DNA from: Macrostomum lignano | Taxonomy: Eukaryota | Assembly (NCBI GenBank): GCA_002269645.1 | Contig: NIVC01001516.1 | Location: 1-64,000 of the forward strand | Reading direction: 5' to 3' | DNA length: 64,000 nucleotides | Shown here: in pieces, positions 1 to 64,000 of the stretch | Position numbering within the stretch: position 1 is the first letter of the stretch | Layout: each line of letters starts with the position of its first letter | Notes under the pieces: model-generated | What the model was told of the DNA's origin: nothing | The model's database searches: none | Seen by the model: the letters and a program-made list of their open reading frames with translations, nothing else | Translations under genes and position numbers: made by a program

Positions 1-10
1 GGATTTCATT

Positions 11-180
11 TTGTTTCCGTTTCTTTTTTCTCCTCTCCTCTCTCATCTCCCCTCTCTCCTCTCTCCCCTCCTCTCTCCTCTCTCATCTCCCATCTCTCCT
101 CTCTCCCCTCCTCTCTCCTCTCTCTCTTCCTCTCTTCCTCTCTTCCTCTCACCTCTCCTCTCTTCTCTCTTCTTATCTCA
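11..180. repeat. CT-rich simple repeat
   Basis: Degenerate (CT)n/(CTC)n tract; ORF 11..214 is its artefact. Confidence 0.9.
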
Positions 181-1640
181 CCTGGCCCGCAGTCATGCGC
201 TATCTGACTATTAAGTTAAAAAAAGTTTGCCAACCCCTGTTTTAGAGCGAGGTAACTGCATAATTAAATTAAGGTCCAACTGAATTTAAAACCAACTTTA
301 TAATGTTGGAATGCACGGCGATTTAAAGGTTGGAATTTAAGCTTCGTTAGTCCCATTAGGTTATGTTTACTCTTTATTTCTAAGAGGGTTCGTACAGGCG
401 CGCGTAATCTGTCGGGGTGTGGAACGGCAAAATTGAAATGGCATGCTTTCCACAGTGAACTGGTTCGCAACGGAAATTCAAGGTGCTGCTGCACGTTTGC
501 ACATTTACAATCGTGCGCATTTCCAAGAAAATTTCTAGAATCTGCGACGCCTGAACTTCGATAGCCATAGGCTAAGATCTTTATCGGCAGATTTCACTAT
601 CTGCCTGGCTAACTAGTTGGCAACATACCTGATAAGTTCAAGCATAGTTTCATGCAGTTTATAAGCTTGATCGCACCGAGGCTTCGGGCCGAGAGCAATC
701 TCAAGAACTTATAAAGAAAGAAAGATTCGCCCAAATACCAAATTTCAGCTTAAAAGAAAACTATTAAATTTATCATTTATTTAACTGACAACGGAAGCAG
801 TGAAAGAAAGCATGCATCCTATCTGTGCTCATCTGCTTCCGTGCTGCTACCTTTGCTGCTGATTATATTCATAGGCAGCACTGCGGCTGCTTCAACTGGA
901 CGGAAGATTTCCTGGCGCCAAGCCAAAGGCCGGGTCAATTGCACAACTGATCGTGAGTCTTACTGTATAGCTAGGTGCTCTATCGAAATGCTATATACTA
1001 AAATAGAAAATTATTTAATTGGGTCCTTTAAAGAACCTGGACAAAGCAGAAGCACAGAATTTCATGAAACCAAAAGCTTCCACTATAAATAAAATATCGC
1101 CTGTTAACTTCGGTGAAATTATGACATAAACGTTTCCATCTATTCTATTAGAGATGAGTGAATATGAATTTATTCAGTATTCATACATATTCACTCAACA
1201 TTCCACAACGTAAAAGTCAAGACACCTAAAACACAAGCTATATTTAAAATCACTACATGCAGCTAACTATAAAAGGGACGCCAACTAAAGCGCCGGAACC
1301 GAAGTAAAGCTCTGGACTGAACCAAGCCGACCCAAATCTATTACTTCTCTGACCAGTCAACTAAAAACACTGAGAAACTACACCCCATCCGGGTGCTCTC
1401 TTTGTGCTTCCAAGTATTTACTCAGGAAGCTACTTAAGTTCTAAGTATAGACTCGTTCACACCGCCATCAAAATAAAGTCAATTTTAGCGAGATCACACA
1501 GATAATCCATACTTTTCGACGCTTTGTAGCTCGGACATCACTGGTTTAGTGATTTGTTCGATGTTGTGAATTAGTTTCACCAAACAATAACCTTGTCCAA
1601 CCAAGCATATTGACTCATCGGAACTCTACTCATTGACAGA

Positions 1641-2160
1641 ATGAACTCAGTAAAAACAAAATCATTATCTTATCGCCTCAAAAATTCAGCCAAGTATCTG
1701 TGCGGCCGAGTCAAATCGGTGCACGACGGCGACTCGTTGCGCATCATCCCGGAGACGAACGACGACGGCGACAGGGCGTCAGTTCGTGTCCGCCTGATGC
1801 AGATCGACGCGCCGGAGTTGAGCCAAGCTCACGGACGAGATTCTCGCAAAGCACTGGCCAGCAGGCTGCCGCGCGGTACCCGAGTCTGCGTGATCTCACC
1901 TGGTCGGGATTACTATCATCGAATACTTGGATTTGTCTGTCTAGCTAAAGACGACATCGCCTACCGGATGCTGGCCGAAGGACACGCCTGGTGCTACCAC
2001 AACACCTGCAACTTGCGGTACAAAGCAGCCACCAGCGCTGCCAGGGTCGCAGGGCTCGGTCCTGTGGACGCCCGGACAGACGCCAATGGCTCCGTGGGCT
2101 TATCGTCGGTTTCAGCGGAGACGCGCCAGAAAGCACCGACAGCAAGGAAAGAAAGAATGA
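1641..2160 (+). CDS. Thermonuclease / staphylococcal nuclease-like protein (stand-alone bacterial-type SNase), one +1 frameshift at ~2061
   Basis: SNase motifs VHDGDSL, VRLMQIDAPE, GRDYYHRILG, MLAEGHAW. Removing one C from ggt-cc-tgtgg (2058-2067) restores the typical C-terminus GLWTPGQTPMAPWAYRR, ending at TGA 2158-2160 (~172 aa). Intronless. Confidence 0.8.
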
Positions 2161-2718
2161 GGGGCAAGAGCTGGAATGCAACTGTAGCTTTTGGGATGAT
2201 GCCTTTGATTTACAGCTTCAATAATACAACAATAAAAACAATAAGGGTGATAGGAGCAATCGTGTGTCCTAATGAATTTCCATTTACCAACACGTAATAT
2301 GATATATGATTATTACACACCAAATCATGTTACGCTGAAGCAGTGTCTGACACTATTTTTTCGTGCATCGTAGTGAGTCCAGTGTCCAGCAGTAAACAAA
2401 CCAGCTCAATACGCTAAAAATAAAGAACTTCTAAAATTTAAAGCGCCCTATAATGTGTCTGTCTACTAAATAATGAGTTACTAAGTAGTATGTTACGCTA
2501 ATGTAGACAGATAAATTACGATCGAATTTCCGTTTTTCAACGCAATAGCATTCAAATAGCCTGACTTATTAATGATAGTATCAAACGATACTTTCTCCTT
2601 TTTTCGTTATTTTGAAAAGAACGATAGGGTACTCGACGGTACGCTCGTATGAGTAAATTAAAAGGGCAGTGGCAGTACTACTAGCGTAGGGAATATGGAT
2701 CGTTTCTTCTATCATTAC

Positions 2719-3025
2719 CTCTCTCTCTCTCAAGGTGCCATACATGTATCGACGGAGGACGTTGGCGATGGCGACCACAGTCTTCCACAAAGCACGGTCC
2801 ATTGAGGCGTGGAGTATTTCCAGTCTTGTTCATGTCATCCATTGAGACAGGTTCTTCAGAAATATTTTTCGTTGCCCTGCCTCCCATGGTCTCTTTTTCC
2901 TTCAATCTGCCCAGTCACTGACAGGCGTGACAGCTGCTCGATTCCTGTACCTTCTTCATAATAAGGCCAAAGGACTCCAACCTGCCGTCTCCTAATTTTC
3001 GCATCAACTTCCTTCTGCAATCAAC
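2719..3025 (-). mobile_element. 5'-truncated, decayed RTE-type LINE 3' end
   Basis: Minus-strand fragments KIRRRQ..EQLSRLSVTGQIEGKRDHGRQ..LKNLSQW..MDRALWKTVVAIANV..GT match the RTE ORF2 C-terminus; followed by a (GA)n tail at ~2719-2731. Confidence 0.7.
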
Positions 3026-3137
3026 AGGGGGAAAACCTCCAGAGGGAAAACTCGCTGCGGGAGAATATCGCTGCGGGAAAAGCACGCGAGGGCGAACCTC
3101 GGCGGGAAAACTTCCTGCGGGAAATTCTCATAGACCC
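3026..3137 (-). mobile_element. Single end of a foldback/MITE related to the 40170-40710 element
   Basis: Reverse complement begins GGGTCTATGAGAATTTCCCGC, like GGGTCCATGAGAATTGCCCGC at 40171, with repeated (t)cccgc subterminal motifs. Confidence 0.6.
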
Positions 3138-4094
3138 ACTGTATGCATCAGCCCCAGCCTCTAGCTCTTGCCCCAATTAGCTGATAGATGACGGCTGGGG
3201 GTGCATTATACGAGTATAATAATTGGAATAATTAAAGACAGCGTAGCATTTATATTTTTTCTGGTTTAAGATAGCGCCTGTATGCAACCCACTTCTTGCT
3301 ATGGCCTGTTTCCAAATTACTTTTTTTCTATTCTGTACAATCTCTCAAGGCTTGGCTGATTACTCTAGTGGATAGGCCACCGCAACACACCATGGCATAT
3401 AGCATACAGTGCAAATAGATCAGTGCTCAGTGCTGCTCAAAATTATCTGCTCCAACTCGTTTATACGTTTCTATTATACTCGAATTTAATTACTCTACGC
3501 TCGTATGTAGGTGTCCTTAGAGTGACCCTTTGCTCTATGCATGCTCACAGAGTTAGGAGAGGTGGTAGAGAACTCCGAGCTCTCAAGGCTTTTTGGATGC
3601 TTTTCTATAATGACCCTATAAGAGCTTATTACAATCTTGAGTTGCTGTCTCTGGCCTCCGCTCATTCAACCGTCTGTCAATCTTTCTCACAATATCTGCA
3701 AAACCTTTCATACTATAGCTCTATATTGAATATGCATTAAGCTGTGAAATCTCGCTCCAGCGCTTTTGAAAGGTGATGCAGCTGAGTTAAATACTCTGGC
3801 AAAAGCTGGATTTTTATCTTTGGAATCCGTTCTTTTTTGTCAATGCACATTTGTTAATCATTTTTTATTTGTATTGAAATTTGCTGCTTTTTTAATCCAT
3901 AATTGAATTATTAATTCCCGGATTTTGAAGAACAATTGCTACACATAACTGCTGATGAAGTGAGGTACTGGAAAAATAAGACAGGGATACAGGGCAATTC
4001 AGGCGGAGGTGCAGGCAGGGGAAATGAGACGGAGACAGACAGGGTGTTAGAGAGAGGGTACTTGTTTTGAGGAGAGTTCTGATGTGAGTTGTGA

Positions 4095-4160
4095 TCCCGG
4101 GATTCTCGGGATCAGGATATCCCGGACTTTGCCAATCCAGGGATCCCGACGAATTGGGCC
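4095..4160 (-). repeat. CCCGGGA-rich dispersed repeat fragment, inverted copy of ~5141-5206
   Basis: ~66 bp, 3 mismatches to the reverse complement of ~5141-5206. Confidence 0.75.
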
Positions 4161-5236
4161 TACCGCTGAGCTGAGCTACCGGCACTTGTCAGGTGAAAAT
4201 CGTAATCGTGCTTTGATTTATTAATCTTTTAATCATGCAGGCTAGTGAGAAGGCTATAGGGCTGCAGGGATATAAAACTGAAGCTGTTGGCAGATCGTAA
4301 GATTTCAGGTGTAATAATGTACGTGCAACTATATGCATAAGTACTCGCAGACTAATGTAATTATTATTCCAAAACCTGTACACAGAGCCTAAAGCAATAG
4401 AAGCCAATTATGCTGGTGAACGCAGCATTCAGCAAGGCGATTCCTCATTGTTTCCGATCACAGCGCTGGCGCTTGCCAGACGGGAGTCAAATAATTTTTC
4501 ATTTGAACTCTCCCACTATCTCAAACCCAGCTAAAATCAGGGCCCAGGGGGTCTCGACTCTCGACCTTGCGCAGATCAGAAGCCCCCTCTATGCGAAAGA
4601 CATTCTCAGCACTGTCAGGATACCCAATTTAGATGCCCAGCACATAGGAAGTGGTGGCAGAACTACATGTACTTAAAGCAGTCCCTACTTTCAAAACTCC
4701 TTGGCCGTAGTTGGGATTAGAATAGTGCGACCTTGCTATCGGACCACTCACCCACAACCCAAGCTACATGTATACCAATTCTCCATCTATAGGGCGGGTG
4801 CCCCTGGGAGGGTGAGGTCTGATCCCCTTCTAACCTGGTATCCAGCAGTACCTCAGGCCATACGTGTATAGCTCTGTATAAGCTATCATTCCCCAGGTTG
4901 CATCACAGGCATGAAGTGTGATTTTCATGAGCTGAATGTAAAAATGTGCGTCTATTGCGCCAGCCCGTACATCACACACACTCCAATTCAGAGCTCACTG
5001 TCAGTTTCTTCTTTGCAAAATATTTTATTCTGTTCTACTTTGTTATTGAAAGCCCCTTAAACGATGGTTCGCCTTCGACAGCCAAAATTGCACCAACAAA
5101 GATTAGAAACTTTTTCAATTCCGGGATCCGGGGGTCCCGGCCTAATTGGTCGGGATCCCGGGATTGGCAAAGTCCGGGATATCCTGATCCCGAGAATCCC
5201 GGGATTGGCAAAACTCTCCTACATATTACTATCAAG

Positions 5237-6038
5237 TAGGGATGTCGATTCCCCGGGGAATTTTCTTATCGGGGACCCCGGGGAATTTACTGTCGTTCCC
5301 CGGGGACCCCGAGGAAAAGAAAAAATAAGTAAAAAACGGCGGATAACTTTTAAGTGGAATTTTTTAACTTTGATTTAAGCTTTGGACTACGTGTTCAAGG
5401 CGCAAGGGTAAAAACTCTAAAAAATGTTTATTTAAAACTGCATTTGACAACGTGGCATCACCAAATCGTGCGCGCACCTTTGTCAGAAAGAGTCCAGACT
5501 CCGGAGGCGGAAAATGCATGCTCAGCAGCTGCGCTCGTGGGAGGATAATTAATGAATGAGACTGCTGTTATAATCGGAATTTTTATTTCTGCGATAAATC
5601 ACCATTTTGTCCTTGTCTAATATGGAGTATTTTTTTATTGTATGACACCCCCTATGCGTCAGTGACTGACGCAGGACGCAGCGCTGTGCCTGCGTCAAAT
5701 GCGTCAAGCCGTCAACGCAGACCAACACAATAGTCAGTAAGGCTTCTTTTTCCTGACGGGTTTCTACGTGCAATTTGCTTGATTGAAAGACTAATAGTAA
5801 AAAAACATTTAAACGTGTGTTGTGTTTGAAATAATACATTGAAATAAGCAGTTTTGCCGTAAAAAAGCATAGACAGAGTTTCAATCAGCTTTCAGTGAAT
5901 CATTTTCTTATTTTAATGGCAAAAAATAAGTTAAAAATGCATTTTTTCTTCCCGGGGTCCCCGGTCCAACTCCCCGGGGAGTATTCCCCAACAAGCTCCC
6001 CTGGGCCCCGGGGAGCACTCCCCGGGGTCGACATCCCT
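5237..6038. mobile_element. hAT-type MITE (802 bp) nested in an older CCCGGGA-rich element
   Basis: Perfect 12-bp TIR TAGGGATGTCGA; perfect 8-bp TSD CTATCAAG (5229-5236 / 6039-6046). The host element end GGGATTGCAATCCCTA is at 6207-6222. Confidence 0.9.
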
Positions 6039-7629
6039 ACTATCAAGACTAAGAAATGTCCTTCAAGACTCGGTCGAATGTTGATGGACTGATGCAAAAA
6101 TAATGCTCTGGAATTTGTAGCAAGCATTTGCAGCAAGCAAACTCGTAAAACGGAAGCAATATTGCAAAATTGAACACAAAAATTTGTCCCGGGATTCGGC
6201 ACTCCTGGGATTGCAATCCCTAGACACAAGATACAACGTACCAATACCATTACCAACTACCAGGCTACCAGATTACTTAAGACTAAAACTTAAATGAGAG
6301 GCGAGAGCTAGCAGGCAGCAGCCTAGCCCTAGTAGCGGACACTGAGCGAAACCGTGGCAGAAACGGGTGGGTCAGTGTCAGTAGGTGGCCAAACGAAGGG
6401 TGGGTGGGTGAATTTGTGGGCGCCGGGACAAGTGCTGCTGCTATCGAAAACAAAACTCAGTCCAAGGCGCATCCACCGGTAAGGGTCACCCAGCCCCTCT
6501 CTCCAATCTGAAAGGAAAACAAAACCAAAGAGCGGCAATGCCTGACTTGAGGGTGTGTATGTACAACGATGTACGTTAATTCCAGCCCGGCGGAAAAACT
6601 CACACTTCGATCCGGACCGCCTAATTGGTCAGTTGGATGGTGGGGTGCTCGCTGGGGTGTTGGGGTGAGGGGTGCTTCTCCAGACAGTCCCCCTCAAGTT
6701 AGGCCGAAAACCCTGCTTGCTATGGCTTGAAGCTTGAAATTAGGTTTGGGTTGATAAAGAGGTGGTGGAGGTCTTAAAAGCGCGCCCGTGTTGTATTAAA
6801 CGTCTCTGCTTGTTATATAGTGAGTCATTTTAGTTTCTCGCTGTACATAGCGGCACTGGCCCCTTCCTCCCCCAGCCCTCTGCTAGCATTCAGTTCATTC
6901 TCTCTTTTTAATTCAATCTGGGGGGGGGGGACGGGCCCTCACCCACCCGACACAAGCGCATAAAAGTAAAGCAGAGGGCACGCCTTCGTTTTACTGTCTT
7001 ACTCGCTCTGCGTTGCACGTAGAACCAGCGCGGTCATCCAGAGAGATAGCGCAGCACAAGGTAAGACGAAGAATCAGAAAAGCTTTAACCGGTTAATCAG
7101 TAATACTGCAACAAAGACGCTTTCGAAGCCTGGTTTGTTGCCTGTGTTGCGGGTTGAGTTATGACAAGCTTATTCAGGACTCGATTGTACTGCCTCCCCC
7201 TATTTATCACTTAAATTAATCTCTGGTTTGTGCGGGAGTACCCGTCTAGAGCATGCCGATCTGATGTTGAAAAACGATCTGCGTTCATGACTAGATTGCT
7301 ACTCCTTAACAACCTTGGATTGTGCAACGGATTGTTTATTTAGCATTACGCAAATTTGATTTGATTCACGACTGTTCCATGATTTATGATCATATTGTGT
7401 TCCATGTTGCTCTTTGTGTTGTGTTACTGTTCATTGTTCATTCCTCATCCTGTTCTTGAAATATTTGAAGGCTATAAAAGTTTATCTAGGATTAGAAAGT
7501 TATCCAGTTATCCTGCTAAAAAATTAGAATCGGTCAAAATGTGAAGCTGCTCTGTTGATTGAAACATTAACCTTATGGTTAGACACAACTTCATAGAAAT
7601 AGTATATTGTGGACTTGTGGTCGCTTTTA

Positions 7630-7695
7630 ACTCCGAACTACCCTCCTTTTACCCTCCGAAATCCGCCCCCCAACTAATTTCTGGTTGCGCTACTG
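7630..7695 (-). mobile_element. Partial copy (one end) of the CAGT(A/G)GCGCAACC MITE family
   Basis: Reverse complement similar to 8452-8530, ending GGTTGCGCTACTG at 7683-7695. Confidence 0.65.
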
Positions 7696-8451
7696 ACAAT
7701 TAATAAGAAACCAGAGTATTGAAGTCTACGTCCTGCGTCCCACCTACAGTCGGCCACTCTTGATCAGTTATTTATTCAGCTTCTTTAAATATCAGACTCG
7801 AAGTTGCTAGCACTGCTACTTCGAGTACTATGTGATAACTTGGAGCTTGAAATATTTCGACAAAAAAACGAACAAATAAATACAAAAGATATTTCAGTGA
7901 ACATTAATTCAGCCTTGAAAGCTGTGAATTTATCTTGTACTTGTGCTTGGCTCACTGTCACCAAAAAATATTGAAGCGCATACTGCATGTGCATGCAGAA
8001 CACGCTTGCGCATTATAATAAAAAATAAACATCAGAAAAATTCTGGCCACTGTCCAGGAAACGCAGCCCGAGATCTGGAATTGACACCCCCTCCAGACAA
8101 AAAAATGCTGGGCAAGATATTGAAGATCTTCACAGAATTCTCGATTACTTTCAAACAGCGATTAAATCTATCTGGGATCTGGCCAACTTGTTCTCACTGC
8201 AAAGGTGGGTAGCTTTTCACAATTCATGAAATTTTATCATCATTGTAAAGTTGGGATGGCAGACTATAACTTTATTCCTTAAAAAGTATTTTTAATAGTT
8301 TAACTGACTTTTTTAGGAAAGTGCAGCTCCATCAAATGACATCGAGTTTCTTTCACACGCGTTCAGATTCGGAATTAGAAACGCAGTATAATCCCAATTC
8401 TGGTAGCCCCAATTCTCAAGAATTCCAGAATCGATCTTACTGTACAGTTTT

Positions 8452-8693
8452 CAGTAGCGCAACCTGAAATTTGTTGAGGGGGCGGATTCTGGAGGGTAAA
8501 GACCCGAGGGGGGCGGATTCTGGAGGGTAAAGACCCGAGGGGGCGGATTCTGGAGGGTAAAGAGCAAAGACCCGAGGGAGCGGAGGGTTTGGCTCTGTTT
8601 TTGGCGAAAATTCACTTGGTTCCCCTTTTGATTTTTTCAGGTCTCAGCCTAAAGGGGGGGGGGGGGGGGCGCCCCCCTCTGGTTGCGCCACTG
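8452..8693. mobile_element. hAT-type MITE (242 bp)
   Basis: TIR CAGTAGCGCAACC / GGTTGCGCCACTG; 8-bp TSD ACAGTTTT (8444-8451 / 8694-8701); internal ~30-bp tandem repeats. Confidence 0.9.
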
Positions 8694-8957
8694 ACAGTTT
8701 TCCCAGTTCATCAAACTTTAATCGATTGGGAAGAAGTCATTCAGCTTAAAACAAGCCAAATTCATACAAACCTAACGTTTGTCCAGTCAGGTTAGTCTGC
8801 TTCGGCCAAATTGTTTGGAAAGAGTGTCATTTCCATGTTTCCAGTATTCTCTGAACTCTCTTAGAAATGATTCAATTCGAAGATAAAAAATGAACACTGT
8901 GCCCAGCCCGGTGAAAATAATTTTCTGTTATTGTTAAAAAAGTAACATTGTCCAGTT

Positions 8958-11501
8958 CTAAGAAGCGTCGACTCGATTTCGGCACCACTTTGTCCACATC
9001 TTTTTTATTTGTTGTTGATTCGCTTCGCTGTCGGATTCAGGGCTGGAGCTTTGGCTGCTGCTGATGTAGTCCAACTCAAATTCATCAGGCGTAGCTGATC
9101 TGAACGTTTTGTTGTCTCGACTGTCCACCATCTCGTTGGTATTGTGATTGGTAGGAATTGTGTCAGCGGCAGGAAAATTTGACCTACCTGCAGATGTAGA
9201 CGGTGCAGTCCGTTCGCGTGGCAGCTCTGCGCAACTTCCTGTGTCTACGTGTACCTCAATAGGAGAAGCAGAGCTGCTTTCATCCGTCTGTTTATCTTCA
9301 TCGCAGTCGGAAACTAAAATACTTCCAACTTCCATAGTTGCGCCGTTTAAGTTGTGAATGTAACTATTATTTAACACGGTGGTTGGGTCTGTAAAAAGTA
9401 GTTCCCTTCTGTCTTTTGGATTGTCACAAGTCGTATGATTCGCAGCGGCAGCTGCTGGTTGACTACTTTGCCGATAGCTATTATTAAAGGCATCAAATTC
9501 AGCGGAAACTCCAAACTTAATTAGGTCTGCATCATCAAGTTCGTTGTCAACCGGCGCAGTTTGTGAGTCGATGACGAATGAAAAGCCTGCGTCATTATTA
9601 TTACTGGCGGAACTGCGGGACGAAAGCTTTTCCTCTCTAGAACCTAGCACTTCAAATATGACGCGTCCACTGTCTTCGGTAGTTACATGTACCTCTTCTG
9701 GTTGGGCAGTCTTGTTTGCTGCAGAAAAGTTGACCCGGTCTTGCTTCTCCTCATGGGCAGTTTTGTTTGCAGCAGAAAAGTTGATCAGCTGGTCTTGCCT
9801 CTCCTCATGGGCAGTTTTGTTTGCTGCAGAAAAGTCGATCAGATCTTGCTTCTCCTCATGGGCAGTTTTGTTTGCGGCAGAAAAGTCGATCAGGTCTTGC
9901 CTCTCCTCATGGGCAGTTTTGTTTGCAGCAGAAAAGTTGATCAGCTGGTCTTGCCTCTCCTCATGGGCAGTTTTGTTTGCAGCAGTAAAGTTGATCAGCT
10001 GGTCTTGCCTCTCCTTATGGGCAGTTTTGTTCGCAGCAGTAAAGTTGATCAGCTGGTCATGCCTCTCCTTATGGGCAGTTTTGTTTGCAGCAGAAAAGTT
10101 GATCAGCTGGTCTTGCCTCTCCTCATGGGCAGTTTTGTTTGCTGCAGAAAAGTCGATCAGATCTTGCTTCTCCTCATGGGCAGTTTTGTTTGCGGCAGAA
10201 AAGTCGATCAGGTCTTGCCTCTCCTCATGGGCAGTTTTGTTTGCGGCAGAAAAGGCGATCAGGTCTTGCCTCTCCTCATGTGCAGTTTTGTTTGCTGCAG
10301 AGAAGTCGATCAGATCTTGCTTCTCCTTATGGGCAGTTTTGTTTGCGGCAGAAAAGTCGATCAGGTCTTGCCTCTCCTCATGGACAGTTTTGTTTGCAGC
10401 AGTAAAGTTGATCAGCTGGTCTTGCTTCTCCTCATGGGCAGTTTTGTTTGCGGCAGAAAAGGCGATCAGGTCTTGCCTCTCCTCATGTGCAGTTTTGTTT
10501 GCTGCAGAGAAGTCGATCAGGTCTTGCCTCTCCTCCATTTCGTACACATAGCTGTCGCTGTCATCGTCATCATGATCTAGTGATCCTCCTGATACATGGA
10601 ATTCGTGTATTTTCGCGGCACTGCTGCTACTAGACTCCTCAGCGATTTTACTGAGCATGAACTCGCGTCCATCTTCATCTCCCTGCCTTGTCACTTCAAG
10701 TGCTTGTACACGAGGAAAGTGACAATCAGCTGTGCAAACACGGCCAGGGCCTTCTATAGTGGGCGTAAAGCTGAACGTATGGTTAATAGGCATATCTATG
10801 GATATTTCGCTCTGCATTGCGACATCAAAGGCGATCACGAAGCACTTTCCAATATCATCGACCTCGTCGGAATAAACCATCACGTCAGATTCCAAGGCTG
10901 GATGAATATTGTTGTCCATTTCAGTTACCTTGCAGCTGTGAAGTGAGGCTTCGGAGTTGCTGTAAGAGTCTTCCGATTCGACTGCGTCAGTAGACAGTAC
11001 ATGAAACGATTCTGTTGTTTCTCTTCTAATTCGCTTTGGAATTCCTGAGCTGGAGTTGTGCAACCGAGACAGCGCAGACCGCGTTGTTGCTGTCGACGAG
11101 CCATCTTCCGTTTCTGGTGTCTCCCAGTCGCCGCTCGCTTGTTCCGTCAACTCCGGTAGTTGAAAATCAATTTGTTCAACGCCGCCATGCGGCTGCCTGA
11201 ACAGATCTCGAATTCTCCCGGCAGGATGTTGCCGCTGATACACGCTGACTGGCGCAGGCTTAGCGACGAATTTATTGGCGGTGTTAAACTGACTGTCAGC
11301 TTGATTTTCGCTATCTGTCTCTTCAGTCGAGCAGCTACCGTCGATTAGTACAGGTGACCATTCACAGGTGCTCTCATAGCATTCTGTCGTAGTTTCCATT
11401 ACAACTCTAGCGGCTCTAACTGAGCTGGCTTGAGAGGCTGTAGTAGAATTTTCGCTAAAGTCGCGCGAGTGCGAAATTTTTGATGCTGTAATTTGCCGCA
11501 T
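8958..11501 (-). CDS. 847-aa acidic, Ser-rich, likely disordered protein with 16 tandem 17/18-aa repeats (EERQDLIDFSAANKTAH)
   Basis: 2.5-kb stop-free ORF with long non-repetitive flanks; repeat-unit length variation is 51/54 bp (frame-preserving). No signal peptide and no recognisable domain. Confidence 0.7.
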   Translation of the reverse strand: MRQITASKISHSRDFSENSTTASQASSVRAARVVMETTTECYESTCEWSPVLIDGSCSTEETDSENQADSQFNTANKFVAKPAPVSVYQRQHPAGRIRDLFRQPHGGVEQIDFQLPELTEQASGDWETPETEDGSSTATTRSALSRLHNSSSGIPKRIRRETTESFHVLSTDAVESEDSYSNSEASLHSCKVTEMDNNIHPALESDVMVYSDEVDDIGKCFVIAFDVAMQSEISIDMPINHTFSFTPTIEGPGRVCTADCHFPRVQALEVTRQGDEDGREFMLSKIAEESSSSSAAKIHEFHVSGGSLDHDDDDSDSYVYEMEERQDLIDFSAANKTAHEERQDLIAFSAANKTAHEEKQDQLINFTAANKTVHEERQDLIDFSAANKTAHKEKQDLIDFSAANKTAHEERQDLIAFSAANKTAHEERQDLIDFSAANKTAHEEKQDLIDFSAANKTAHEERQDQLINFSAANKTAHKERHDQLINFTAANKTAHKERQDQLINFTAANKTAHEERQDQLINFSAANKTAHEERQDLIDFSAANKTAHEEKQDLIDFSAANKTAHEERQDQLINFSAANKTAHEEKQDRVNFSAANKTAQPEEVHVTTEDSGRVIFEVLGSREEKLSSRSSASNNNDAGFSFVIDSQTAPVDNELDDADLIKFGVSAEFDAFNNSYRQSSQPAAAAANHTTCDNPKDRRELLFTDPTTVLNNSYIHNLNGATMEVGSILVSDCDEDKQTDESSSASPIEVHVDTGSCAELPRERTAPSTSAGRSNFPAADTIPTNHNTNEMVDSRDNKTFRSATPDEFELDYISSSQSSSPESDSEANQQQIKKMWTKWCRNRVDAS
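9700..10537 (-). repeat. Coding minisatellite, 51/54-bp unit x16
   Basis: Units such as gggcagttttgtttgcggcagaaaagtcgatcaggtcttgcctctcctcat, counted from the translation. Confidence 0.95.
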
Positions 11502-12755
11502 ATTCTTTTTTCTTATGAATTAGGAAAATTCGATTCTGGCTTTTTAAAATTGCTCATGTAAAACGCACGTATTTATTAAAATTAAAATGAGGCTATTCCA
11601 ATACAATGTATAAATTGTCTGTGGTAGTTTCATAAATGAAACTGCATGGCTATCGAGTACTATGTGACGATTAACCGGGAGACTCGAAATCAACTGACGA
11701 AAACAAATACAGCAGAGGCAAATTTTGTAGCAGTAGCACTTGATGATAGTAGCGAATGATGCGGGCGGTGGCCGCAGTTCTTATTTATTGTAAACCGTAT
11801 GAGTGGATAGTTAGGGCGAATTATCAATTCTGTCTGGGTAGTTAATAGAGATGGGCCGGAGTATTTGCTGAATCCGTAAGGGACGCACTGGGCGGCTACG
11901 CAACAATAAGATAGATGATAGATGATAGAGCGAGTCGATGAGCCTGAGGCAATGCAATGGCGACGATGTGATGGCAGTGATCGTGTGGTGGCGGTACTCG
12001 TAGCGAGACAGACGGTACAGACGGTAATGGTGGCGTGATCGAGAATTGGCGGTGGCGGTGGTGTGACTGAGACTTGGCAGAGGCGCGGTTTAGAACTGTG
12101 GCGGAGCGAGAAGACGGGTAAACAAGTAAACAATTAGGGTCTAACCCCCAGCCAGACAGGCCCCCAGCGGAAAAACCAACGTTGATTCAACGTTGTTGCC
12201 CTCCGTTGGCCCTCCGTTGGGCGTGTCTGGAGGAAAATCCGTTGATACAACGGCGGTTTACCAACGGCAGTCCAACTGCGAATCAACGCTATTCCAACGG
12301 TCAAAATATTGTTAGAGGTGCTGATCCACGTGAAATAAAGTATGAAAAAAGCCAATTTTCGCAATCAAATGTGTCATGTCACTCATGTGTCCAAAAACGT
12401 TACATTTTAAAGTTGAGACATTTGGCAAAGATCTATATATTTGTCAAATGAAATTACAGCAAAGCAAAAAAATTTCTCGCATGCATACGCGTTTAAAGTC
12501 TCAGGGTTAGGTATAAGTGTAATCATTGGCAATTATTGCAAACTAAATTACTTGTTTATAGGATGATATGATGGCTTTAACAACGTTTTTTATAAATCAT
12601 TTCTTTATTTTTGAATAATAACTAACTGACTGTGTCCAATGATTGTACTGCACATAAGCTAAGTAGCTAAATTGACACAACATACGATCAATATCCCATT
12701 CTAGCCTGCTGATTATCTCAAATTGTACTGCTCACAGGTTACGACTCCAAACCAG

Positions 12756-15078: not shown

Positions 15079-16995
15079 TCAAATAGCGCAACAATAGGGA
15101 ATTACTATATATTCACCTCCAGATGATGGCAACAAGAAGCACTTTCTGCTTGCATTACCAGTAACAACATTACGTGTCACATGGTAAAATCCAATATTCA
15201 GAATTTCTGATGAATATGGACTTGTATACAAAGGATGCGAAAACTTTAACACATGACCAGTTAGGACATTTCCTACTACTGTACTAATGAGTATTGGAAC
15301 TCCATTTACAACTGCACAATTATTTGGAGACTTCTTAGAAAAAAACACAATACTAGCTGGATCACTTGTAAGAGTAGCACGGACATTAAAAAACTGGTGC
15401 AAAATATGCTTAGAAGCAAAGCGGGTAACTGAAATTCGTCTTTTAACATGCCCCAAATAGTTTTCGAAGTCAAATGCAGAAAAATTGTCAAGTTTTCCAT
15501 ATAGACAAACAAATTCATAAAGATGGAGCAAAGTGTGAGGGTTATAAGAAATTGATGCTTCACCATACAATGACTCCATTTCCTTAACAAAAATCTCAAT
15601 ACAACGATGAGCATTTGGTAAGAGAGTCTGGTGGACATCAGAGCAAAAAACATAGATAGAAAAGTGCAAGTGAAGAAAGTGGTCATAGTATTTTTGTGGT
15701 AAAAACTTTCTGAAGAAAAAAGGCCCCAAATATAGCAAAAAGAGTCGAAACTCAGTTGCTTTAAAGTGAGCTAAATTTGTATCAATACGGCGAGGCCTCC
15801 GCTGAAACTCAGCAGGAGTGAACTTGGCATAGCTATCAATAAAATCAGACAGCTCTTTTAACTTTAGTGCTGAAATCTTACAAGATGAACCAAACTTAGA
15901 TGAAAAAAGAAAATTAAAAACTTTTCTACAAACACCTAAACATACAGCATGTTGATAGTCAGGTGGAAAATGAGAATAAAAACCAATATTTTTAATACTC
16001 AGCAAAGGTGTTGAATGCCCTACCTTCTGGTTATTTTCTTTAGAATCAGCATAGCACTGATCAGTTCGCAAAGTACCAATAGAAGATGAAAAAACAATAC
16101 GATTAGCAAAATGTCTACCTTCAGCTTGACAATAACTACATCCCATGCGAGAGTTATGGTTCATAATAGAGCAGATATGAGCATGAGCAGGGGCATCACA
16201 AACAAAAAGAGCACGGACTAACTTAAAATGGTGGCCAAGAACTTGAATACCATTACTAAAAAAAATGTTTAGCTCTTCACAGAAGCGTGATAACAAAATA
16301 TTCAATGATGGTTTACTTTTACCAACAAAAATAGCAATGGGCAATGGACGCAAATAGCCTGATACTTTCATTAAAATTGGCCAAGCTGACATGGAAGAAC
16401 TATTATACAAGGGCATTCCATCTATATTGAAAATGGAATTTACTTTTATGTGCCCAGTTTCAGAATCAGCAATGCATTTTGAAAAGTCAAAATAATTATT
16501 GCTAACACAAAATTCCAAATTTTTGGCCATTGATACATAGAAAAAGTCTCCTTCAGTAGCAATAATAGAATAATAAGAAGAATTAGCAGAATGCTTTTTC
16601 AAGCCATATACAGACTTTGGAACTGAAATACCCTTGCGATTTAAAAAGGCAAGGATCCAAGCCATAGCAGAGCGTGACACATTAAAAAGTATATAAAATA
16701 GAAGCAGTTCTTGCTCAATTGTTAGCTCTGGCGTAGCATCTTCAACTTCAGGTATATCTTGATCCTCTTCTACAAGGTCTTCATCTGATTCACTATTATC
16801 CATTGGATTGCCCTGACTGTTGCCAAGAAAGTCAGTGTCGTATTCTTCAGCTTGAATGAATTCTTCATCTTGTTGATGATTATTGCCTTGGGCTTGATCT
16901 TGGTTAATGGGTTCAGATGCTTTTTGAAGCTGCTCTACTTCAATTTCCTCTAAACAACCCTGAAGCACTTTTCTAGCAAAGTTACGTTTGGACAT
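15079..16995 (-). CDS. EnSpm/CACTA-family DDE transposase, 638 aa, uninterrupted
   Basis: Motifs NIDGMPLY..SAWPIL, CDAPA..GCSYC, DYQHAVCLGV, FQRRPR, FKATEFRLFLLY, YNPHTLLHL, SAFDFENYLG. The ATG is directly preceded by an acceptor-like TTCAG. Confidence 0.9.
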   Translation of the reverse strand: MSKRNFARKVLQGCLEEIEVEQLQKASEPINQDQAQGNNHQQDEEFIQAEEYDTDFLGNSQGNPMDNSESDEDLVEEDQDIPEVEDATPELTIEQELLLFYILFNVSRSAMAWILAFLNRKGISVPKSVYGLKKHSANSSYYSIIATEGDFFYVSMAKNLEFCVSNNYFDFSKCIADSETGHIKVNSIFNIDGMPLYNSSSMSAWPILMKVSGYLRPLPIAIFVGKSKPSLNILLSRFCEELNIFFSNGIQVLGHHFKLVRALFVCDAPAHAHICSIMNHNSRMGCSYCQAEGRHFANRIVFSSSIGTLRTDQCYADSKENNQKVGHSTPLLSIKNIGFYSHFPPDYQHAVCLGVCRKVFNFLFSSKFGSSCKISALKLKELSDFIDSYAKFTPAEFQRRPRRIDTNLAHFKATEFRLFLLYLGPFFFRKFLPQKYYDHFLHLHFSIYVFCSDVHQTLLPNAHRCIEIFVKEMESLYGEASISYNPHTLLHLYEFVCLYGKLDNFSAFDFENYLGHVKRRISVTRFASKHILHQFFNVRATLTSDPASIVFFSKKSPNNCAVVNGVPILISTVVGNVLTGHVLKFSHPLYTSPYSSEILNIGFYHVTRNVVTGNASRKCFLLPSSGGEYIVIPYCCAI

Positions 16996-57116: not shown

Positions 57117-57158
57117 AATTGCAGTGCCCCACGTATTGCAGTGCCCCATCTGGTTGCC

Positions 57159-61954
<4,796 letters not shown>

Positions 61955-62972: not shown

Positions 62973-64000
62973 TCAGTTCCTAGACTTCTCCCTGGCCCTC
63001 AGCCACAGACAGGCAAAGGCCAGCAGCCGCAGGCCGAGAATCAGGGCGCACAGCATGCCCAGATTGAAGCCCGTTCGCTCCGCGCTAAAGTTCAAACTTT
63101 CGATGACGTCACTGCCGGTGCGGAACACCTGCCGCTTGCCGTCCAACGGACAGCTGATGTTGGCCACGCGGCTCCACTGGTTCACCACCAGGGTCTCGTA
63201 GCCGTAGCTGAACCAGGACAGGTAGCGGAGCCAGTCCAGCCAGACAGGTATGCTGGCCTGGTTGAGGAAGAACCCGCCCAAGGGCAGGAAGGGCAGGATG
63301 GCCGCGGTTGGACACGGCCAGGCGATGTCGATTCGGCCGCTGGCGGTGGCTACAAAGTAGGCCAGGGAGACGGCCGACTTGCAGATGAGCACAACCACGA
63401 GGAGGGCCATCAAGAAGGCCGGCAGGCTGCGCTCCAGCCGATGGCCCAGTAGATGACCACAGTGAAGCTGAACGGAAGCAGCAGGAAGAGCGGCGTCTCT
63501 GCCAAATTCTTGCACAGGAAGTAGGCGTCACCCGGTACATGCCGTTGTGATGCTCTCGAAAAAAAATCGGGCAACTCCAGCGGAAAGAGTTGAGCACAGT
63601 GTAGAAGTTTGAGAAGGTTGTGTTAGTCAGGAATAGGAACAGCGCGCCGTTCAAGTTCATCACTCCGTTCTGGTCGTAGCGTTGGTCAAAGTAAACGGCG
63701 GCCACGATCACCGCCACCACGATGGTCTGCAGGATGCGCACGGCGAAGACGTTCGCGTCGCGAGCCTGGGCCAGCCAGCAGCGCCACAGCAGCGCAGCAC
63801 CTGCCGGCTCCAGGACGCTCGGTAGGGCGACTGGCCCGTCAACTGGCTGGCCACGCTGGCCACCTGCTGGCTGTCGCAGAAGTCCCGACAGCGGACGGCC
63901 TCCAGCACGGCCTCGGCCAGGGCCGATTTTGCGAACGTGACGGCCAGCTGGTCGACTCGCTGCCGGCACTCGGCTTCCGAGCCGGCGCGCACAGCCAGCG
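62973..64000 (-). CDS. white: ABCG half-transporter (white/scarlet-like), C-terminal ABC2 membrane domain, partial, with frameshifts
   Basis: YRASW..LLWRCW..RILQTIVVAVIV..MNLNGALFL..PIFFREHHNGMYR..GGFFLNQASIPVWLDWLRYLSWFSYGYETLVVNQW. The frame is broken by 1-nt indels and the 5' part lies outside the window. Confidence 0.85.

Follow-up and report, generated by a model that had tools for sequence, protein, structure and literature searches.

The window, i.e., the whole 64,000-nucleotide stretch of the flatworm Macrostomum lignano analyzed here (contig NIVC01001516.1, assembly GCA_002269645.1), carries an SNase-type nuclease sequence near its left end (Table 1). Translation of the mechanical open reading frame (ORF) at this site reveals the motifs VHDGD, IDAPE, and GRD.Y.RILG, and an hmmscan search of Pfam returned the SNase domain PF00565 with an E-value of 6.6e-10 (39.8 bits, versus a cut-off of 21). 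The observation is real and far beyond chance, and confirms the SNase motifs that a preliminary description of this DNA had reported at 1641-2160. Within the ORF, the match covers positions 1-81 of the 107 in the profile, and the end of the domain is missing from this frame. The tail of the SNase family, LWTPGQTPMAPWAYRR, lies on the same strand in a different frame and ends at a stop codon at 2158-2160. It is of the type L-W-x(n)-P-W-x-Y-R-R and identical to the tail of the intact M. lignano proteins P0002 and P0003; it is the canonical tail that had been noticed in another frame. The GC content is approximately 60% at 1700-2150, versus 35-40% around it. With the broken ORF as a single-sequence query, the PDB yielded only a spurious match to a designed trefoil, and an NCBIfam search gave thermonuclease equivalogs below threshold only.

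Table 1. Features of the SNase locus, the clathrin gene that shares the window, and the three SNase paralog groups of M. lignano.
Feature	Position or contigs	Strand	Remarks
Broken two-exon SNase gene copy	812-2160	+	Limits: conserved start codon and the stop of the intact copies; aligned to L001/L002
Exon 1 equivalent	812-952	+	Aligns to the 133-nt exon 1 of L001/L002; GTGAGT donor directly after
Phase-1 spliceosomal intron, GTGAGT...CAG	953-1689	+	Aligns to the 734-nt intron of L001/L002; GC 0.368
Mechanical ORF	1641-2297	+	218 aa; 5' end intronic, 3' third an out-of-frame read-through
Exon 2 equivalent	1690-2160	+	Whole nuclease domain and basic C-terminal tail; 60% GC; aligns to the 470-nt exon 2
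In-frame part of the SNase domain	1785-2009	+	hmmscan, aa 49-123 of the ORF; holds the Ca-binding and catalytic motifs
AATAAA hexamer	2231-2236	+	71 nt past the intact-frame stop; possible polyadenylation signal, consensus match only
Clathrin heavy-chain gene exons	24642 to about 36400	+	Exon-sized ORFs, the first with five clathrin propeller repeats (E 5e-46)
Paralog group A (P0003 and copies)	Contigs of 500 kb and 64.7 kb		Intron of 734 nt
Paralog group B (P0013, P0163)	Contigs of 608 kb and 186 kb		Intron of 3319 nt
Paralog group C (P0014, P0165, P0166)	Contigs of 354 kb, 702 kb, and 120 kb		Intron of 3536 nt

The clathrin heavy-chain gene marks the contig as true DNA of an animal. Farther along the forward strand, two ORFs at 57141-57842 and 58266-59837 (GC 0.63-0.65) match the Peptidase_S15/CocE-NonD hydrolases (TIGR00976, E 7e-27 and 2e-9), a family found mostly in bacteria and fungi. 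The two ORFs probably represent exons of a single gene, and the contig could thus hold another gene of bacterial type besides the SNase. On the reverse strand, the ORF at 8958-11501 encodes 847 aa, in which a 51-nt (17-aa) unit is repeated 16 times in tandem, and has only a low-complexity "Zein" match. It probably encodes a functional repeat protein, as it is open in the homeolog with 3-nt indels only. Another reverse-strand ORF, at 15079-16995 (638 aa, weak DUF1258 match only), has a GC of 0.36 and a GC3 of 0.26, which sets it apart from the window's other coding regions. A third, at 63109-63969, matches the ABC-2 type transporter membrane domain (E 3e-14) and probably belongs, as an exon, to an ABCG-type transporter gene located at the window end. 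Positions 1-180 contain a CT-rich microsatellite of about 140 nt with a period of 7-40 nt, and a 67-nt inverted repeat pair (4094-4160 and 5139-5205, 95.5% identical and approximately 1 kb apart) may represent the ends of a small non-autonomous element.

A protein search identified two near-identical M. lignano proteins that have the tail in frame, P0003 (200 aa, BOX15_Mlig022653g4) and P0002 (198 aa). P0003 is encoded on two further contigs of GCA_002269645.1, at loci L001 (500-kb contig) and L002 (64.7-kb contig), and at both of them the 133-nt and 470-nt exons joined over the 734-nt intron give P0003 exactly. The accessions of these two sister contigs are NIVC01000568.1 and NIVC01004013.1. 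The window is collinear with L001 over positions 1-12066 (96.5% identity) and with L002 over positions 73-8240 (98.0%), each alignment reaching the end of the fetched DNA. Substitutions relative to either of them amount to approximately 1%, with 4.5-4.8 indel events per kb. M. lignano possesses three subgenomes, S, L1, and L2, with an SNP divergence of 1.4-2.4% (PMC10733133), and a triplet of collinear copies is thus expected. Regarding the copy number, which the preliminary description had named as a point to check, the count is three collinear homeologous copies, plus two diverged paralog groups (B and C) in the genome. Between L001 and L002 the gene is identical, with only 8 substitutions in 8.15 kb. 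The divergence of this pair (L001 9211-17500, L002 9259-17415) is far below the published subgenome divergence; the pair may reflect a double assembly of a single locus, or a region that was duplicated or converted very recently.

Pairwise alignment of the intact L001/L002 exons and intron to the window set the exon and intron limits listed in Table 1. The intron contains the ATG and the first 16 codons (1641-1689) of the mechanical ORF; the gene is accordingly not intronless, as had been proposed, and its true first exon lies upstream at 812-952. In the intact copies, exon 1 encodes a predicted hydrophobic secretion leader followed by a short linker, with a maximum 11-aa Kyte-Doolittle hydropathy of 2.88 for the P0003 leader. 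The bacterial homologues likewise carry N-terminal leaders. The earlier statement that the protein lacks a signal peptide does not hold for these copies, in which the leader is of a typical hydrophobic kind, and because of this leader an extracellular enzyme is predicted to be likelier than the intracellular nuclease previously considered. The intact protein would thus be secreted, judging from its N-terminal sequence. Because transcripts were used to annotate the assembly (PMC5730564), the intron should have RNA evidence behind it. P0001 (166 aa), the product that the databases give for the window contig, begins with an internal Met of the mechanical ORF, as expected if the spliced window transcript lacks an open frame from the normal start. 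Both this product and the corrected 172-aa protein of the preliminary description are artefacts of a broken copy, and the 200-aa protein of the sister contigs is preferable to either of them.

Compared with the intact copies, the window copy departs in its coding sequence by 4-6 substitutions, of which one alignment scores 2 as synonymous and 4 as non-synonymous. It also contains two frameshifts of one base each and an in-frame length difference of 9 bases, and thus more than the single defect first described. In the assembled window copy, a translation begun at the conserved start cannot join the leader or the tail to the catalytic core in a single frame; a complete domain in one frame is found in the L001 and L002 copies and not in that of the window. 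Staphylococcal nuclease unfolds once its C-terminal segment is lost. The product of the window copy would at best be leaderless with a scrambled C-terminus, and on account of the latter the copy is most likely inactive.

Whether these breaks are real or stem from the assembly bears directly on the status of the window copy. The assembly was generated with Canu from PacBio reads and polished with Pilon (PMC5730564), and the presence of three near-identical subgenomes makes residual one-base errors possible. A functional third copy whose frame breaks are residual assembly or polishing errors would also fit the prevalence of one-base indels between the window and its homeologs (22-24 of 37-39 indel events), the frame problem that the older-assembly product P0002 likewise shows in leader exon 1, and the retention of all catalytic motifs in the window copy. 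This explanation is nevertheless doubtful in view of the internal controls. The 0.6-kb SNase coding sequence contains 3 indel events, and its density of 5 per kb is the same as that of the non-coding flanks (4.5-4.8 per kb). Conversely, the adjacent 2.5-kb ORF on the same contig (8958-11501, reverse strand) differs from its homeolog by 59 substitutions and five indels, all of exactly 3 nt, and its frame is open. Coding DNA on this contig is thus not randomly noisy at the one-base level, and a loss of constraint on the SNase copy is therefore favored. The window copy also has more than one defect, and its substitutions are mostly non-synonymous. The preliminary description had left the frameshift as either an assembly error or a recent inactivation; of the two, the controls lean toward real mutation in a redundant homeolog. 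On this comparison of sequences, breaks that are real rather than assembly errors are favored, and there is a good probability that the window copy is a true pseudogene, most likely one decaying after the recent genome duplication of M. lignano.

The nature of the intact enzyme can be predicted in some detail. A profile of 79 family members retrieved S. aureus thermonuclease from the PDB with an E-value of 2e-21. The AlphaFold model of the intact allele P0003 has a pLDDT of 85.7 and a pTM of 0.76, with values of 85-98 in the domain and low confidence in the leader. Using this model, Foldseek returned staphylococcal nuclease (target-normalized TM 0.79, probability 1.00), with the SN domains of human SND1 among the top matches (E about 1e-9). 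Residues D57, D59, R79, D84, E87, D118, Y120, R122, and Y147 of P0003 align to the Ca2+ ligands and catalytic residues of the staphylococcal enzyme, in which their roles are textbook knowledge. All flatworm proteins keep these nine columns, as do 247-265 of the 265 homologues in the alignment, and the window frame retains the Asp-Gly-Asp, Arg, Asp-x-Pro-Glu, and Asp-x-Tyr-x-Arg positions. By analogy, the flatworm enzyme would work like staphylococcal nuclease through Ca2+-dependent hydrolysis of DNA and RNA, a catalytic activity that is predicted from residue conservation.

The gene belongs to a small family in M. lignano. An exhaustive HMMER search with P0003 against 1.84 billion representatives gave 10,731 matches, only five of which had E-values below 1e-30, all of them M. 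lignano proteins. Groups A, B, and C of the family (Table 1) are 35-47% identical to one another and share a leader exon, one phase-1 GTGAGT..CAG intron, and a single exon with the whole domain; hydrophobic N-termini are present in 3/3 groups. Five columns hold cysteine in every flatworm protein, and this residue occupies them in 0-25 of approximately 259 bacterial homologues. From this pattern, the five flatworm-specific cysteines are predicted to form disulfides, which is probable. Because the intron, the leader exon, and the cysteines are common to all groups, one ancestral flatworm gene appears to have been duplicated later. No nucleotide similarity to the window was found at the paralog loci, in the flanks or in the coding part, which fits great age. 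In a neighbor-joining tree of flatworm and bacterial sequences only (136 columns), the flatworm proteins come together with a bootstrap of 20%, and groups A and B with 70%. The common intron, leader, and cysteines are the main arguments for one transfer rather than several. Two proteins listed in the paralog B cluster, P0160 and P0161, are not SNases and were dropped. In addition, an older M. lignano model, P0164 (UniRef A0A1I8GL13, 1918 aa), has a GPCR domain protein fused to an SNase of paralog group B and is probably a merged-gene annotation artefact.

Outside M. lignano, all named relatives are bacterial or bear a prokaryote-type metagenome annotation, at 33-47% identity. They include Alcaligenaceae and Pusillimonas, with labels such as "endonuclease YncB" and "micrococcal nuclease", and PF00565 is precomputed on all relatives. 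A scan of one genome per bacterial species (GTDB, with the flatworm alignment as the query) confirmed 488 relatives. The best of these belong to the Burkholderiales (Alcaligenaceae and Acidovorax), other Pseudomonadota, and the Planctomycetota, at 38-42% identity; they are spread over taxa at similar identity, and no single bacterial donor stands out. The nearest neighbors in the tree carry no organism names. In the exhaustive HMMER and profile searches, no eukaryotic proteins besides those of M. lignano were among the best matches, and no other annotated flatworm or animal protein was returned, within the contents of the databases for other flatworms. The flatworm SNase proteins are already present in public databases as uncharacterised "TNase-like domain-containing" entries, and a literature search returned nothing relevant on these gene identifiers, on flatworm thermonucleases, or on SNase transfers into animals. 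The protein search that the preliminary description had proposed thus gave bacterial sequences as the best outside matches and returned no widespread metazoan family. Its central claim, a stand-alone bacterial-type thermonuclease in an animal genome, stands: the protein has a single domain, and its gene lies beside host genes.

Since the closest identifiable relatives outside the flatworm are bacterial, horizontal transfer, as first suggested, is the best reading of these data, with the qualification that the flatworm clade of the tree has a bootstrap of only 20%. An old bacterial-to-flatworm transfer followed by domestication is, in our judgment, fairly probable; we infer both the direction and the age of the transfer. 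Somewhat less firmly, though still on the favorable side, the fuller history would be that the Macrostomum lineage long ago acquired a bacterial thermonuclease, which was domesticated into a secreted enzyme with three paralog groups, one homeolog of which is now being lost. A recent transfer is ruled against by the three diverged paralog groups and the host-like codon composition: the GC3 of the SNase gene is 0.64, compared with 0.55-0.85 for host (clathrin) exons in the window. The GC-rich island was also rejected as a sign of foreign DNA, as its GC3 is host-like and the contrast is one of exon versus intron and intergenic DNA. Likewise, P0198 and P0015 (E 1e-47 and 7e-29) were rejected as intermediate relatives. 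Both are two-domain proteins with lipoprotein-like leaders, whose scores are inflated by the second domain, and the genes on the short contigs of P0198 abut one another, as in prokaryotes.

Plants and fungi also have stand-alone SNase-domain proteins, of the CAN type and the LCL3 type, respectively. The flatworm family could accordingly be an ancient eukaryotic stand-alone SNase that descended vertically and was lost in most animals. Such a history would agree with the flatworm paralogs being as distant from each other (35-47%) as from bacteria, which points to great age, as well as with the poorly resolved neighbor-joining tree and the host-like codon composition of the SNase gene. It is nonetheless unlikely, as the best matches of the exhaustive and profile searches contained no eukaryote but M. 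lignano and those with names were bacterial or prokaryote-type metagenome proteins, 488 relatives were confirmed in genomes of bacterial species, and the searches returned no further annotated flatworm or animal protein.

The preliminary description had also considered the nuclease as cargo carried by a virus or transposable element. Conjugative plasmids of bacteria indeed often carry thermonuclease genes (34% identity, at least 5000 records), a few phages do so as well (3 records), and the SNase gene is multi-copy in the M. lignano genome. However, these copies stem from homeologous blocks that are collinear over at least 8-12 kb and not from a bounded mobile unit, and the flanks of the paralog loci have no nucleotide similarity to the window. 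Positions 1-8900 contain no long ORFs, no genes of the size of a transposase or reverse transcriptase, and no bracketing repeats; the sole repeat pair (4094-4160/5139-5205) is downstream of the SNase gene and does not enclose it. Without carrier genes and with collinear flanks of 8-12 kb, the cargo explanation is very improbable. Bacterial contamination or a chimeric assembly join, as might be suspected from the bacterial nearest relatives and a GC-rich exon within AT-rich DNA, is less credible still and can practically be dismissed, given the canonical spliceosomal intron in all three SNase paralog groups, the location of the SNase genes on contigs of 65-700 kb, the clathrin heavy-chain gene in the same window, the threefold presence of the locus with collinear animal-type flanks, and an SNase GC3 that resembles host exons.

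Taken together, it is on balance probable that positions 812-2160 represent a broken homeolog of a gene for a secreted, Ca2+-dependent SNase whose family is bacterial-derived. According to this preferred reading, the window copy would be one of three homeologous copies of a secreted Ca2+-dependent nuclease gene. Exon 1 of the intact copies would provide an ER signal peptide for entry into the secretory pathway, and exon 2 would encode the full SNase OB-fold, in which no metal-binding or catalytic residue is missing, along with five cysteines and the basic tail. The mature domain, of approximately 175 aa, would probably be cross-linked by the conserved cysteines and bind Ca2+ via the Asp/Asp/backbone site. 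After release to an extracellular site, which may be the gut lumen, mucus, or another secretion, the mature enzyme could cut DNA and RNA like the S. aureus nuclease. Plausible roles would be the digestion of nucleic acids taken up with food, or an action on DNA of microbial or extracellular origin. The three paralog groups would go back to one ancient transfer of a thermonuclease gene from bacteria, and the gene would subsequently have acquired an intron, a eukaryotic leader exon, the cysteines, and host-like codon usage. In the window copy, the reading frame would have been lost through the two one-base frameshifts and the in-frame length change.

If the bacterial origin is true, this family would offer a clean example of a foreign hydrolase turned into an ordinary secreted animal enzyme family, with the marks of the change, i.e., the leader exon, intron, cysteines, and duplication, on show. 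It would also be the first flatworm nuclease of the SNase type to be traced to bacteria. M. lignano is a flatworm model open to transgenesis, and the pattern suggests that it uses an SNase-type nuclease extracellularly. Furthermore, the window copy would illustrate gene loss among the three subgenomes of a very young polyploid.

Among known systems, the S. aureus thermonuclease (micrococcal nuclease, Nuc) and the bacterial YncB-type enzymes resemble the flatworm protein in having one SNase OB-fold of approximately 140 residues behind an N-terminal export leader. Nuc and the bacterial thermonucleases share with it the DGD, R, D-x-P-E, and D-x-Y-x-R positions, and the proteobacterial and planctomycete enzymes have the same C-terminal G-L-W ... 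P-W-x-x-R tail. In contrast to these bacterial enzymes, the flatworm gene is animal-encoded and has a phase-1 intron between leader and domain, and its protein has five extra cysteine columns that are almost absent from bacteria. Its identity to any bacterial protein is only 33-47%, and the window copy itself is, unlike the bacterial genes, frame-broken. The thermonucleases of Enterobacteriaceae plasmids belong to the same family and are of similar length, with tblastn covering 91% of the query, but they are only 34% identical and thus more distant than the environmental chromosomal homologues; the tblastn search of plasmid records gave no sign of the plasmid type as the donor.

Within animals, the obvious comparison is Tudor-SN/SND1, which has the same fold. 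SND1, however, comprises four or five SN domains and a Tudor domain in approximately 900 aa, whereas the flatworm protein has a single domain and a leader in 200 aa, retains the catalytic residues, and is nearer in sequence to the bacterial thermonucleases; among the PDB sequence matches listed, 60/60 were the staphylococcal enzyme. A Tudor-SN fragment was ruled out given the one SNase match, the intact catalytic set, and the greater proximity of bacterial proteins. No published transfer of an SNase-type nuclease in flatworms was found in the literature. Bacterial-to-animal transfers in which the gene gained introns and a signal peptide are documented, e.g., for secreted hydrolases in nematodes, rotifers, and arthropods. 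As proposed for the flatworm SNase, such transfers have a lineage-restricted family with bacterial nearest relatives and an acquired intron, leader, and host codons.
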